In this document: in pieces, positions 52,025 through 57,115 of the stretch
How the letters are laid out: each line of letters starts with the position of its first letter
Position numbering within the stretch: position 1 is the stretch's first letter
Source: Cyanophora paradoxa CCMP329
Lineage: Eukaryota > Plantae > Glaucophyta
DNA length: 64,000 nucleotides
Assembly (NCBI GenBank): GCA_004431415.1
Contig: QPMI01000090.1
Span: 62,001 to 126,000 of the forward strand
Direction: 5' to 3'
Notes under the pieces: generated by a model
Seen by the model: only the letters and a program-made list of their open reading frames with translations
Database searches by the model: none
What the model was told of the DNA's origin: nothing
Translations under genes and position numbers: made by a program

Positions 52025-53509
52025 TCACTTCTTGTGGCCGTGCCCCTTCGCTGAAGCGCACGGAGTGGGAACGCCGGACACAAGTAGCGAAAGCAGAGGC
52101 GGGGCGGACCCTTCCCGTGGCCCTGGCCTTCCGCGGCGGCTGCGCTCAGAAAGCCGAACCTGCGGCCGCGCCAGTCAGGGGGTGGCGGCGGGGCGAGGGG
52201 GTACCCGCGAACTTCTCGAGCGTGACGCGCGCGCGCTCGTTGATGTGCTTGAAGCGGTCGGGGCCCTGCGAGGGTTCAGGTAGCGCTGAGCTGCGCCGCG
52301 CACGCGCGCGGGCCGGGGCCGGGGCGCGGGGCGGGGCGCACGAGCTGGATGCCGCCGAACCAGCGCGTGACGACGACCAGCGCGTCCCGCACGTCCATCA
52401 GCTGCGCGCGCCGCCCCCGCGCTCGCCGGGGGTACGCGGGCGTTCGGGGGGTACGGGGCGGCGGACGACGAGGAGGGCGAGGAGCTTGTCGCCGGCGCCC
52501 GTCTCCCCGTCGTCGTCCCGCGCCTCCTCCCACTGGCTCTCCCCCACCCTGAACCGCCTGCCCCCGCCCCCGGCCCCCGTTCGCCCGCAGGCGCCGGCGC
52601 GCGAAGCAAGGCGATGGCTAACGGCCGCGCACCAGGCGGCGATGTTGTGCGTTGCGTTCGCGATCTTCTTGTCCTCGTACAGCTTCGCGATGACAGCCCG
52701 CACCTGACCCCGCGGCCGAGTCAGCGGGAGCGGAGGGCGGCCCGCTGCGCGGCCGGCGCGCCTCGTCGTCGGAGTGCACAGCGGCGACGTGCGCGACGAA
52801 CTGAGCGCCGCGTGAGCTGCGCGCGCGGCCGGAGGCGCGCGCGGCGGTGTCGGACCTTCGACTTGCGGTCGGTGATCGGGTCTCCTGTGTGGATCGGGGG
52901 GCATGGGCACCGCGGCGGCTCGGGCTGCGGCTTCGGCGGCTGCTGCCTCGCTTCCTCGCACTCTGACCTGCCGGCGCTGCCCTGGCTGGCCGTGCTGCCG
53001 CTCCGGTCCGGCGGGCTCTTCTGCTGCAGCTCCAGCCTCGCGTCCTCGTACAGCCGCGTTGCGTTCTCGCGCACCCTGCCCTACGCGTCACCCGCAATGG
53101 CCGCGGAAGCGCGACGAGCTTACCACTCAATCTGCTGAAAGAGATGCCCCTCGCCATTTGCCTCGATCGAGATAGATTGCAGGTTCTCGCATATCTTTTA
53201 TCGATCGTGCCCGCGTAAGCGAGGACCGGAGCGCGACGCGCGCTCGCGCGCGCTGACCTCCTGCAGGTCCCGCTCCCGCACCCACGAGTTCTTGTAGCGC
53301 GAGACGACGAGCGGCGCTTCCGCCGGGTAAGCGGTCGGCAGGATGAACTGCAGCGCGAGAGGCTCCGGCGGGGGCCAGCCGGCGACGCCACTTGCGTCCG
53401 GCCTGACGTTGATCTCAAACGAAGGCGGCTCGCCGGCAGCGCTCGACCCGCGCTTGAAGTCTTCGCCGTAAATGGCCTCGAGCGCCACGAACTCGTCCTC
53501 CAGGCTCAT
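52025..53509 (-). CDS. IMPACT: IMPACT/Yih1 family protein (RWD + UPF0029)
   Basis: N-terminal RWD (EDEFVALEAIY...LPTAYP), then PITDRKSKFVAH, KIANATHNIAAW, DDDGETGAG, VVVTRWFGGIQL, RFKHIN. Confidence 0.92.
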
Positions 53510-53574
53510 GGCGCGACTAGGCGATTCACCTATACCCGGCTATTCGTCAAACCTGTGTGTACCCAGCCAAGAAG

Positions 53575-55415
53575 ATGCGGCCTGCTGAGAAAGCAGCGCT
53601 GCTGTTGCTGCTGGGCCTGTGCGCAAGCCCTGCGTTCGCGTGGTGGGCTGTCGGACACCAGGTGGTGGCGGAGGTCGCGTTTCGCAACATTAAACAGTCC
53701 AGCGCCGATCGCATCGCGGAGCTTATAAAGGGTGCGACATTTTTTCCCCTTAGTCTCGTCCTTTCTCGTGTACGCGCGCCGCGCCGCCGACCAAGCGCGC
53801 GCAGTCTTTACGGACGAGTACCCGACCTTTACGTCGATATCCGACCTTGCTACATGGCCAGATGACATTAAGGAGCACGGTAGGGAAGTTCCAAAGCCTG
53901 CAGCTGCGGCGGCCCTGCTGACCGTCGGCAAGGGGTCGGCGTGTATGATGCCTGGCATTTCATCGACATCCCCATCGCCCCGGACCCCAGCTACGCCCCG
54001 AATTGCCCGCCTCAGTCCCAGAACGTCGTCTGGAGCACGAACTCGGCACGCCCTTTCCCGTGCCCTCTCCCGGCAGCAAGCCGCGCCCTCTCACGCACGC
54101 GCGCCCCCTCTGCACCAGGCGCTCTCCATCTTGAAGAGCGCCCGGGCGACGAAGTTTGAGAAGGCCACGTTCCTCAAGTGCGCCTGCGCCGGCCCCGCCC
54201 GCCCGCTGCGCGCTGCCCGCGCCGAGCTGAACGTTCCCCCTCGGCAGCTTCCTCATCCACTTCGTGGGTGCGCGCCTCCGCCGCCGCCTCGCGTGGGGCG
54301 CTCGTGCGGCTCACCGGCGCGGGCTCGCAGGCGACTCGCACCAGCCGCTCCACTGCTCCACCCTCTACAGCGCCGTGCGCCTGCAGCCCGGCGCTACGCA
54401 ATCCGCGCGGCTCCGCGCTGACACTGCACCCGGCCGCAGGACTTTCCGGATGGGGTACGCAAATTCCGAGGGTCCTCGCGATCCGCCAACCCGCCCCACA
54501 GGACCGCGGCGGCAACAAGTTCATCCTCCCAAGTGCGTCTGGCCCACGCGCCGGTACCCGTGTCCTGCTCACTCACTCCTGCAGGCGGCAACCTGCACGC
54601 GCTCTGGGACGGCGGATTCGGCCTCTTTGTCGGGTAAGGGGCGCGGGTCCCGCCGCCGGCCAGTGCCCGACCAGTAACCCGTACCCCCGCAGGCAGGCGA
54701 GGCACCCGACGGACGAGTCGACGAAGGAGCGCCTCGCGAAGATCGCCGACGACGTGACGGCCATGTACCCCCCGTCCTCCCTCGCCGCGGAGCTCGCCGT
54801 GAAGGTGGGTCCTCTCTCGTCTACCGGGGGGTGCGGGAGCGGGACTGGGCGGGGCAGGACGCGATGGAGTGGGCGAGGGGCAGCGCGGGGGTCGGGGAGT
54901 GGGCGCGGGCGGCGCTGCCCGAGGGCCGGCGCCCCTCGGGGGCCTACCTCAACGCCTCGCTCTCCGCCGTGCGGCGGCAGGCGGCCCTTGCCGGCTACCG
55001 CCTCGCCGCCGCCCTCGACGAGGCCTTCGCCGCCGAGGCCCTCGCCGTTGCGGCCGACGCGGCGGCCCGGGCGCTGCTGCGGCCCTGGCCCGAGGCGGCC
55101 GGCTCGGAGGCGGGGCGCCGGGCCCGGGCCTTCGCGGTGGGGCGCGGCCTCTCCGTCGCCGCCTTCTTCACCCTCCTCGCCGGCCTCGCCTCCTTCCGCT
55201 TCCTCCTCCGCCGCCGCCGCGCCCGCGCCCGGCGGCGGCCCGCCCGACGGCGCCCGCCCCGCACGCGCGGCCGCCCGCCCCCGCGCACCTCCTGGCGGCC
55301 CCTCGCGGAGCCGGCCGGCGCGCCCGCAACAGGAGCAGGAGCAGCAGCAGCAGCAGCAGCACAGGCACAGGACGAGGGCGGCGGCGGCGGCGGCGGGGCG
55401 GCAGCCGAGCAGTAG
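53575..55415 (+). CDS. S1/P1 nuclease, isoform A (terminal exon 54858-55415 with a C-terminal TM anchor)
   Basis: Signal peptide then mature WWAVGH, ATWPDDIK, WHFID, FLIHFVGDSHQPLH, DRGGN, NLHALWD. The terminal exon reads QAALAGYRLAAALD, then a hydrophobic stretch and RRRR. Confidence 0.8.
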
Positions 55416-55890
55416 GGCGGTCCGCAGGCGCCGCCGAATCGAACCGAACGGGCCGAACGGGCGCTCTCGAAGCTCCGCTAAGGCGGGGGTCTAGCTATAG
55501 CGCGGGGGGGCAGGCCGATGGCGAGCGGGGTCCGGGGGCGGGCTCTGACGGGGCGCTCCGGGCAGGACTTCCAGGGGTGGGCCGACGGCGTCCACAAGGT
55601 CGCCCAGGACGTGCGCCGCCCCGTCAACCGAGCCGCCTGCGCGCCCCGCGGGTCCTGTCCCCTGACGACCCCCCCCGCAGGTGGTGTACAACGGGATCCG
55701 GGAGGGGGAGAAGCCGTCGCAGGGGTACCTGGACACGGGGATCCGCACGGTGAAGCGGCAGATGGCGCTCGCGGGGTACCGCCTCGCCTCGCTCCTGGAC
55801 CAGGCCCTCGCCAACGCCGCGCCCTTGTCCGCCCACCCCCGCCGCGACGCCGCCGTCCCGCCCCTCCGCGGCCACGCCGGCGACGTCTAG
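53575..55890 (+). CDS. S1/P1 nuclease, isoform B (terminal exons 55566-55610 and 55681-55890, soluble)
   Basis: Same upstream exons. A second phase-0 acceptor gives DFQGWAD...VVYNG...QMALAGYRLASLLD, the more canonical S1/P1 C-terminus, with no TM segment. Confidence 0.85.
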
Positions 55891-56112
55891 AGCCGCGTTC
55901 GAAGTCTAGCTTTTTGTTTTGGCCGCGGCGCCGGCGGCCTCTTTGCCGTGGGGCCCCACCGGTGTTTCCGCCCTCTTTTTCTTTGCTCACTGTATAGCCT
56001 TCGTCGGTATCTCTGTAACTCATTGCCACTACTAGTGATTTGTGCGAGGGGATACGATACGTATACGGATACGGGTGCAGGCCTAAGGGCCGGGATCGCG
56101 ATCGGACGGGCC

Positions 56113-57115
56113 CTAGGCGGAGTGCTGCCGCTGCTCGGGCGTCTTGCCTCGCCTCGCCTGGAACCAGCAGACCACCTTGTACTGCGGGAGCGCGCTCATA
56201 TCAGGCCGCGGACGTCGACGGGGGGGCGGGGGATCGGGCGGGGCGGGGCGGACGTTGATGTAGCCGGTGGAGGCGAGGGTGAGGCCCCAGGCGACCCGGT
56301 GGTTCACCACCATGCTCAGCCCGTAGTTGACGACCGTGCTCAGCGCCAGGCCCCCCACGTACGCCTGCCCCCGCCCCGCCCCCACGCTTCACGCGCCGCG
56401 CGCGACCCCCGCGTCTCCCAGCGCACCGCATACATATCCACTAGGCCGCGCGCGGAGAAGGTGCGATCGAAGACTGCCGCCGCGGCCGGGCGGGGTGAGC
56501 GGGGTGTCGGCCCGGGCAGGAGGCCGAGACCGCTACGCCGGATTCGCACCGATGAGCTGATGCAGAACGTACTGCCAGGAGATGGAGAGCTGCGGAGCGC
56601 GCGCCGATGAGGCCGGGCGCTGGATTCGGCCGCACGATGGCAGGATCGGGCAGCTGCGCTTTGGGGGCGCGCGCGCACCAGGTAGCACACAGCCCACGAA
56701 AAACCGCTCGGGTTGTCGATCTTGTACTCCATCGACCCTATGCGCAGCGGGTTCGACTGCAGGTGCTGGAACATCGCTGCGCGCGCCAATCAGACCGGGC
56801 GCGGCTTCGAAGAGAGCTTTAGCTAGGCGGAGAAACCCTCACCGTCGTACTGCTCGCAGATCGGGGGGATCGCGCGCAGACCGGCGGCGCATCAACGATA
56901 TGATGAGCTGCGCGCCAGCGGTGGGGCTGGGATGGGAAGAGAAGGCGCACCGCTAGGAAAAAGAGCGCCGTGCCGATGCCACCGCTGATCTGCCGGGGAG
57001 GCGGGAACGTTGGGCGGCAGTTGGCCGATCAAATTCCGCGCCGGTCGCGCTGGCGCACCTGGAAGCGTATGAACCGCCCGGCCTCACCGCCAGCGCTCGC
57101 CGTTGCCTTTGCCAT
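56113..57115 (-). CDS. Small multi-pass membrane protein, GtrA-like
   Basis: Exons RFIRFQ-ISGGIGTALF, FSWAVCYL, VFDRTFSARGLVDMYA, AYVGGLALSTVVNY...AWGLTLASTGYIN-YKVVCW. Family assignment is from overall pattern only. Confidence 0.55.

Follow-up and report, generated by a model that had tools for sequence, protein, structure and literature searches.

Can one gene supply both a membrane-anchored and a released nuclease by choosing between two duplicated 3' ends? The question is raised by a locus of the glaucophyte Cyanophora paradoxa CCMP329, found in a stretch of 64,000 nucleotides (nt) that we refer to as the window (assembly GCA_004431415.1, contig QPMI01000090.1, positions 62,001 to 126,000; 68% GC). 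An intron-rich gene for an S1/P1 nuclease spans positions 53575 to 56046 of the window on the + strand, with 12 exons and its ATG at 53575. An earlier inspection of the letters alone (the sequence-only reading) had proposed that one donor in this gene can be joined to either of two homologous terminal modules, here called copy A and copy B, and that only A adds a C-terminal transmembrane (TM) segment. We find that both modules are spliced to this donor in RNA and that B is the default end by a wide margin, and we are mildly inclined to regard A as a maintained, minor, membrane-anchored alternative end.

Exon 10 of the gene ends with ...ELAVK at position 54804, and its donor GT lies at 54805 and 54806. 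Two acceptors follow, both in phase 0 and both opening with Asp. The proximal one closes a 53-nt GT..AG intron (54805 to 54857, with AG at 54856 and 54857) and leads into exon A, an uninterrupted run of 185 codons (54858 to 55412) with a TAG stop at 55413 to 55415. The distal one closes a 761-nt GT..AG intron (54805 to 55565), which contains copy A, and leads into exon B1 (55566 to 55610; 15 codons, with the start of the D..W.. helix). B1 is joined across a pyrimidine-rich GT..AG intron of 70 nt (55611 to 55680) to exon B2 (69 codons, 55681 to 55887; stop at 55888 to 55890), which encodes the terminal helices of the fold plus a brief soluble tail. Where B is interrupted by this intron, copy A reads straight through. 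The coordinates proposed by the sequence-only reading for this region were all correct, and the features that it described are present: two acceptors behind one donor, a hydrophobic segment in A (at 55146 to 55208) with RRRR directly behind it (at 55209 to 55220), and a B end that has its own intron and no hydrophobic segment.

To place these two ends in RNA, we used contigs assembled from four runs, each of a different study (X1, X3, X8, and X13), which were aligned to positions 53300 to 56400 with 55318 to 55409 skipped as a repeat; the contigs are spliced and are therefore derived from RNA. The junction 54804>55566, a skip of 761 nt with GT..AG borders, occurred in all four runs, as deeply covered as the main transcript (65, 42, 37, and 18), and the joint across the B intron (55610>55681) was likewise present in four of four. 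The junction 54804>54858 was carried by a single 400-nt contig of X1, with a depth of 7.7 versus 65 to 88, in which 25 nt of exon 10 are joined to exon A (54858 to 55224) with zero mismatches over 369 nt. A contig of X3 covers 54857 to 55317 and beyond at a depth of 4.5 versus 41.7 and ends at the acceptor, and nothing from exon A was found in the contigs of X8 and X13. Contig depths are rough, and they put the usage of A at roughly a tenth of the depth of B, as an order of magnitude only.

Word content gave a compatible picture. The share of the 31-mers of the stretch was predicted to be 0.30 for an mRNA with the B end only and 0.505 for B plus A, and the observed shares were 0.28 to 0.31 in X7 to X14 and 0.36 to 0.51 in X1 to X6; many unrelated GC-rich contigs share words with the basic tail region of A. 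The contig coverage of A and the word shares together indicate that exon A is present in two studies and is absent, or below the assembly threshold, elsewhere. Hence, the proposal of one gene with two junctions from one donor was borne out by the RNA contigs; of the proposed swap of ends, the splicing of both stands, whereas the two are far from equal, B being found in four of four studies and the A junction in one contig.

What the two ends have in common is a complete catalytic core. The public protein of this gene (P0001; 410 amino acids [aa]) has the A form and maps exactly to eleven exons of the window, the last of which is exon A. It matched Pfam family PF02265 with an E value of 1.5e-43 and 150 bits (cutoff, 29.5) over residues 23 to 282 and over profile positions 1 to 257 of 258, and single exons gave subthreshold matches to the corresponding parts of the profile, with A (E, 1e-3) and B2 (E, 8.6e-6) both matching its C-terminal end. 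The nine zinc ligand positions of P0001 (W23, H28, D72, H86, H139, D143, H149, H176, and D180) occupy invariant or near-invariant columns in an alignment of 93 sequences; in P1 numbering, we take the ligands of the three zinc ions to be W1, H6, D45, H60, H116, D120, H126, H149, and D153. At the N terminus, a Leu-rich core and ...AFA immediately before WW.VGH form a candidate signal peptide, with Trp as the predicted residue 1 of the mature protein. An AlphaFold2 model of the A form had a mean predicted local distance difference test (pLDDT) score of 85.7, and its top 21 matches in the PDB were all S1/P1 nucleases, with a probability of 1.00; only the A form was folded, and the B form was analyzed exon by exon. 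On sequence and model, the gene product is an S1/P1 (class I, three-zinc) nuclease with the all-helical phospholipase C/P1 nuclease fold and a predicted Zn-dependent nuclease/3'-nucleotidase activity. All nine ligands are encoded in exons 1 to 9, which are common to the A and B forms, and the part that varies between the forms is structural only, consisting of the last two helices.

The two copies are homologous and well diverged, as the sequence-only reading had held: A and B2 share 21 of 37 residues (57%; E, 8e-13), both match the C-terminal end of PF02265, and 26 residues are identical over the 55 codons that can be aligned between A and B. Their noncoding flanks (the two introns compared at their 3' ends, and the spacer behind A compared with the B 3' untranslated region [UTR]) did not align above shuffled controls, and third codon positions were identical between A and B at a rate of 0.62 versus a random expectation of 0.49. 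Since the flanks are unalignable and third positions are near random, the duplication is old, which agrees with the age suggested for it earlier.

Of the two copies, B looks like the conservative, ancestral-type end, because it has the higher profile score, the Tyr of the family, and the tail motif common to the glaucophyte homologs. Scored with a C-terminal profile from 148 homologs, which were gathered with the A-type protein as the query and thus if anything favor A, B2 reached 52.4 bits and the equivalent part of A reached 39.8 bits (range for A, 39.8 to 44.5). A near-invariant Tyr, found in at least 90% of the homologs, is kept in B and is Ala in A; A retains W230, Y255, and the LAGYRLA..L motif. 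The nearest relatives, P0002 (MMETSP) and P0003/P0151 (Cyanoptyche gloeocystis), have 39% identity and 304 to 305 aa, and in them the protein ends in a short tail with a D..xxLRLRG motif, which B shares (D..VPPLRG); in A, the linker holds at most a possible relic of this motif (DAAARALLRP). Among the homologs found, no protein exceeded 42% identity to P0001, the nearest (36 to 42%) being glaucophyte and unnamed proteins, and residues 284 to 410, the tail of A, had no match in the homology search. Word searches with exon A (whole exon and residues 1 to 62) came back blank, which low-complexity words and the length window explain, so that they are uninformative on relatives. A word search scored on exon 10 returned only the public A-type model and no full-length B-type protein.

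Whether A is still a live coding exon can be judged from its composition. The openness of its frame is weak evidence, since at 68% GC the other two + strand frames are also open across A. The real support for coding comes from codon-position composition: the G+C content at third positions (GC3) was 0.97 to 0.98 over the 153 codons from 54858 to 55316, compared with 1.0 in the confirmed exons and about 0.75 in the flanks, and with an overall GC content of 64 to 81% in the introns. The fold part (54858 to 55034) is homologous to the last S1/P1 helices, with D..W.., PS..YL, and RQ.ALAGYRLA..LD, and its helices had pLDDT scores of 97 to 99 in the model. The period-3 pattern continues through the rest of the coding extension, namely, an Ala-rich, helical linker (55035 to 55145; GC3, 0.97), a hydrophobic segment of 21 residues (55146 to 55208; P0001 residues 322 to 342), and an Arg/Pro-rich basic tail directly behind it (55209 to 55286). 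Only in the low-complexity end of the exon (55317 to 55415, including the stop), where (GCA)n and (GGC)n encode poly-Ala, -Gln, and -Gly, does GC3 fall to 0.58, with pLDDT below 50; these microsatellites (55318 to 55409) form the last 33 codons of exon A.

Two further observations concern the reading frame and history of this exon. One low-depth contig of X3 carries an additional C after 55256 and differs from the genome by three gap positions in all over 54857 to 55317, in GC-rich sequence of low complexity. A frameshift in A was considered and rejected, as codon periodicity stays in the genome frame to 55316; the additional C could reflect an error in the contig, a difference between strains, a rare variant, or an indel in the assembly. 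Along 54858 to 55316, third positions are G rich, then C rich, then again G rich, and finally C for about 33 codons, that is, they form two G-to-C waves where B2 has one. If each exon carries one such wave, the second half of A, with the linker, anchor, and tail, may once have been a separate exon. Another origin, by loss of a stop and extension into a copy of the pyrimidine-rich 3' UTR, was not supported, as 88 of 283 random stretches of the window scored as high.

The extension of A has the properties of a candidate anchor. Its hydrophobic segment has a Kyte-Doolittle hydropathy of 1.81 (mean over 19 residues), with one internal Arg, lies inside a predicted helix (residues 309 to 351), and is followed by RRRR.R.RRR in a positive-inside arrangement. 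Among 378 open stretches of 125 aa in the six frames of the window, 14 had a hydropathy of at least 1.81 and none of these 14 had a basic cluster afterwards; the combination of hydrophobic segment and Arg cluster is thus more than chance. Signal peptide, fold, linker, hydrophobic helix, and Arg cluster follow each other in A in the order predicted for a type I membrane protein. The claim that A would add a signal-anchor-type C-terminal TM segment and that B would not is supported to this extent, the segment being a candidate anchor as judged from its residues.

The rarity of A finds a likely cause at its acceptor. The proximal intron has a length that is normal for this gene, and the pyrimidine content of its last 20 nt is 0.20 versus 0.50 to 0.75 in the other eleven introns, its 3' half being G rich. 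A C-Y-N-A-Y (CTNAC-type) motif within 45 nt of the acceptor, which we read as a putative branch point, is absent from the proximal intron and present in 10 of the 11 others; CTGAC precedes the distal acceptor at -21 and that of the B intron at -19. The proximal site would be used rarely because its intron has neither a pyrimidine tract nor a branch-point motif. Recursive splicing through the proximal acceptor was rejected, as GAC follows the acceptor and no GT donor is regenerated.

How A transcripts end is a related matter. The sequence-only reading had envisaged a separate poly(A) site for A, and nothing supports one. The 150-nt spacer behind A (55416 to 55565; 76% GC, with 0.72 to 0.78 at all three positions and no codon periodicity) forms the last part of the distal intron, up to the AG at 55564 and 55565, and contains no TGTAA motif. 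Low coverage runs over 55410 to 55536, at a depth of 2.5 and in X1 only, contigs being unable to show RNA ends. In the B transcript, the 3' UTR (55891 to 56046) has TGTAA at 56014 to 56018, a putative poly(A) signal that lies 8 nt upstream of a contig end at 56022 in X13; in X1, the contig ends at 56046. A separate poly(A) site for A is unlikely, and since TGTAA is missing from the spacer and X1 coverage extends to 55536, the two ends are better seen as the outcome of a proximal and a distal 3' splice site that compete with each other. The A transcripts would then run through B to the same 3' end, probably with the B exons left in their 3' UTR.

Based on these features, the following course of events may be proposed. 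An old tandem duplication would have left the last 60 to 85 codons of the gene in two copies, so that the single donor (54804|54805) can pair with the phase-0 acceptor at either 54858 or 55566. By default, the distal acceptor would be chosen, the 761-nt intron removed together with copy A, and B1 and B2 added, giving a product of about 309 aa in which a signal peptide precedes the complete nuclease fold and a short soluble tail ends the chain, that is, a presumably secreted or lumenal enzyme. In a minority of transcripts, the proximal acceptor would be used and copy A read to its own stop, which yields the 410-aa public model: the same core with A-type terminal helices, an Ala-rich linker, a hydrophobic helix, an Arg-rich tail that would be cytosolic, and a disordered end. 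If this protein is made and reaches a membrane, it would be a type I membrane-anchored ectonuclease or lumenal nuclease. Copy A is further proposed to have been kept by selection. Going further, the choice of acceptor might be regulated, for example, by phosphate, nucleic acid supply, or light and dark, so that a selectively kept A and B together act as a switch between a released nuclease and one anchored at the cell surface or in an endomembrane; we hold this extended proposal to be unlikely, and regulation by phosphate or purine status in particular is pure conjecture.

Several results weigh against a maintained and functional A end, and most of them would follow if A were a decaying duplicate in the last intron, spliced in by noise into unproductive transcripts, with B the only functional end and the 410-aa model a wrong prediction. 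This explanation is a real possibility, and we give it a lower probability than that of a minor anchored form. The A junction is known from one assembled contig of a single run, in which it is anchored by 25 nt, contigs give no reliable ratios, strand, or 3' ends, B dominates in four of four studies, and A is absent from X13 and also from X8, despite a main-transcript depth of 37 in the latter. The splice signals of the proximal acceptor are degenerate. Should A transcripts share the poly(A) site of B, a spliced intron would follow their stop codon, which may lead to their degradation instead of translation. On the protein side, A is without the near-invariant Tyr and scores 12 bits under B, its amino acid composition has drifted toward GC-rich codons (enrichment in Ala, Arg, Gly, and Pro; second-position GC of 0.67 to 0.77 versus 0.33 to 0.50 in the other exons), and its hydrophobic segment, which includes an Arg, has a hydropathy close to the minimum for a TM helix; the loss of Tyr, the lower family score, and the shift in composition possibly reflect relaxed constraint on A. 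The ratio of nonsynonymous to synonymous substitution between A and B, about 0.7 to 0.86, is not clearly below 1, is poorly determined, and is uninformative because synonymous sites are limited to G or C and nearly saturated. Both glaucophyte transcripts found have B-like ends only, and, according to the genome paper, its Augustus models need "additional manual curation" (PMC6704402). On the other hand, neutral decay of an old duplicate should have erased codon periodicity, which A keeps with a GC3 of 0.98 over 153 codons versus about 0.75 in noncoding sequence, and should have eroded the family motifs that A retains. Nor is its extension random, as the helix-forming linker, hydrophobic segment, and basic cluster stand in the order of a type I anchor, and its 53-nt intron has a typical size for the gene.

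Two other explanations are far less probable. A merge of two paralogous nuclease genes in the assembly, or an A contig that stems from a paralog elsewhere, is favored by no result, except that A contains low-complexity tracts (55172 to 55275 and 55318 to 55409) that share words with many contigs and are difficult to assemble. In the X1 contig, 25 nt of exon 10 run into 369 nt of exon A without a mismatch, the same donor is joined to B with exact GT..AG borders in all runs, no further nuclease copy was detected in the window by tblastn with P0001 and two homologs, P0001 is alone in its 90%-identity cluster, and contigs of X15, which we guess to be DNA, contain 0.86 of the words of the stretch, all of which makes such a merge highly improbable. 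Equally hard to credit is the reverse of our reading, implied by the public annotation, in which A would be the main biological form and B a minor form or artifact. It has in its favor that the only database protein found for the gene is the A form (P0001; EukProt name, tig00000367_g24476.t1); all four RNA assemblies carry the B junction at transcript depth and the A junction rarely or not at all, and B fits the family and the glaucophyte homologs better. We therefore retain the view that B is the default end and that A may be a maintained minor one.

The rest of this intron-rich gene is made up as follows. Exon 1 (53575 to 53731) contains the start codon, the signal-peptide-like N terminus, and the first zinc ligand motif (W..GH); RNA contigs start at 53555 to 53576, and the joint 53731>53805 was found in four of four runs. 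The remainder of the catalytic core is encoded in exons 2 to 10 (53805 to 54804), which are supported by the mapping of P0001 and by joints in all four runs: exons 2 to 5 lie at 53805 to 53879, 53933 to 54045, 54119 to 54177, and 54248 to 54267, and exons 6 to 10 lie at 54331 to 54374, 54440 to 54454, 54502 to 54532, 54585 to 54633, and 54693 to 54804. The introns among exons 1 to 10 and up to A measure 47 to 73 nt. Two microexons, of 20 nt (54248 to 54267) and 15 nt (54440 to 54454), fall within the catalytic core and are confirmed by the RNA contigs, in which 13 letters separate the flanks of the joint 54375>54501. The intron at 54046 to 54118 has a GC donor (GCACGC...CAG), with the RNA joint 54044>54118 in four of four runs.

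Both neighbors of the nuclease gene are very close. Upstream, an RWD domain gene (Pfam E, 2.8e-9) on the - strand (53198 to 53509) starts at 53509, 65 nt from the nuclease ATG; its RNA contigs end at 53540, and those of the nuclease gene begin at 53555. The two genes form a very tight head-to-head pair and probably share a promoter region. Downstream, a convergent gene on the - strand (56021 to 56400) has an intron at 56182 to 56253 (CT..AC on the + strand), and its two short exon pieces had no match in Pfam. One contig each of X3 and X8 extends from the nuclease 3' UTR into this neighbor, indicating that the 3' ends of the two genes overlap, as described for many Cyanophora genes (PMC6704402).

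For users of this genome, the most immediate consequence is a concrete correction of the public gene model. The only public protein of the gene, a 410-aa Augustus model, is the rare form, and work on localization or phylogeny that starts from it would be misled; the soluble form of about 309 aa, encoded by nearly all transcripts, did not turn up in the protein collections searched. In a genome with 67.6% GC, 9.2 introns per gene, and a mean intron length of 86 bp (PMC6704402), the locus also offers a clean test of splice site strength among tiny introns, with a weak acceptor 53 nt and a strong one 761 nt from the same donor. If the A form is made, the gene would represent a compact, one-gene route to an anchored and a released extracellular nuclease, in which the last helices of the fold are swapped together with the anchor. 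If, in addition, copy A is kept by selection and the switch is regulated, one gene would do what trypanosomatids do with separate genes. This would also document functional alternative splicing with exchange of a fold element in a glaucophyte, a group in which, to our knowledge, alternative splicing has hardly been studied. We found no literature linking S1/P1 nucleases to alternative splicing, and in the Cyanophora genome paper (PMC6704402) the phrase occurs in the reference list only.

The closest functional parallel is found in trypanosomatids, as the sequence-only reading had pointed out. In agreement with it, Leishmania has separate genes for a surface 3'-nucleotidase/nuclease (3'-NT/NU) and a secreted nuclease, LdNuc-s, and in Leishmania and Crithidia the two localizations are thought to serve extracellular nucleic acid and purine/phosphate salvage (PMC8554303). 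The class I nucleases of these organisms are likewise S1/P1 enzymes; their anchored form carries a signal peptide at the N terminus and a TM segment at the C terminus, both of which are also predicted for the A form, and their soluble form is without the anchor. Separate genes are used there, whereas here there would be one gene with two acceptors, the Cyanophora side being known from the genome and RNA contigs. The Cyanophora protein is not an ortholog, its nearest relatives being glaucophyte at 39% identity, and the likeness is one of architecture only.

Among solved structures, AtBFN2/ENDO2 (4cxo and 3w52), tomato TBN1 (3sng), Aspergillus S1 (5fb9), Penicillium P1 (1ak0), and Stenotrophomonas SmNuc1 (8qjl) share the fold of the A-form model, with TM-scores by target of 0.71 to 0.79 and sequence matches with E values of 2e-15 to 2e-11. 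They differ in being soluble, single-ended enzymes of about 250 to 270 residues with no duplicated terminal module or TM tail. An architecture closer to that of A occurs in the S1/P1 homologs P0111 (346 aa) and P0112 (329 aa), in which a short linker, a hydrophobic segment, and a basic cluster likewise come after the fold; their linkers are shorter, and their anchors cannot be aligned with that of A.

As a gene arrangement, the locus resembles two well-known kinds, namely, alternative 3' exons for membrane and secreted forms and tandemly duplicated exons. The classic case of the former is the immunoglobulin mu heavy chain, which resembles the nuclease gene in having a shared body and two 3' ends, one with a TM anchor. 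There, a poly(A) site competes with splicing and the ends are nonhomologous, whereas the two nuclease ends are homologous through duplication and exchange a part of the fold itself, with no sign of a separate poly(A) site. Mutually exclusive exons in tandem copies are known in animals and plants, and the two copies described here are likewise tandem, homologous, and in the same phase, with one chosen per transcript. They depart from that pattern in being terminal, in that one copy is split by an intron, in their very different lengths, and in a usage that is strongly skewed toward B.

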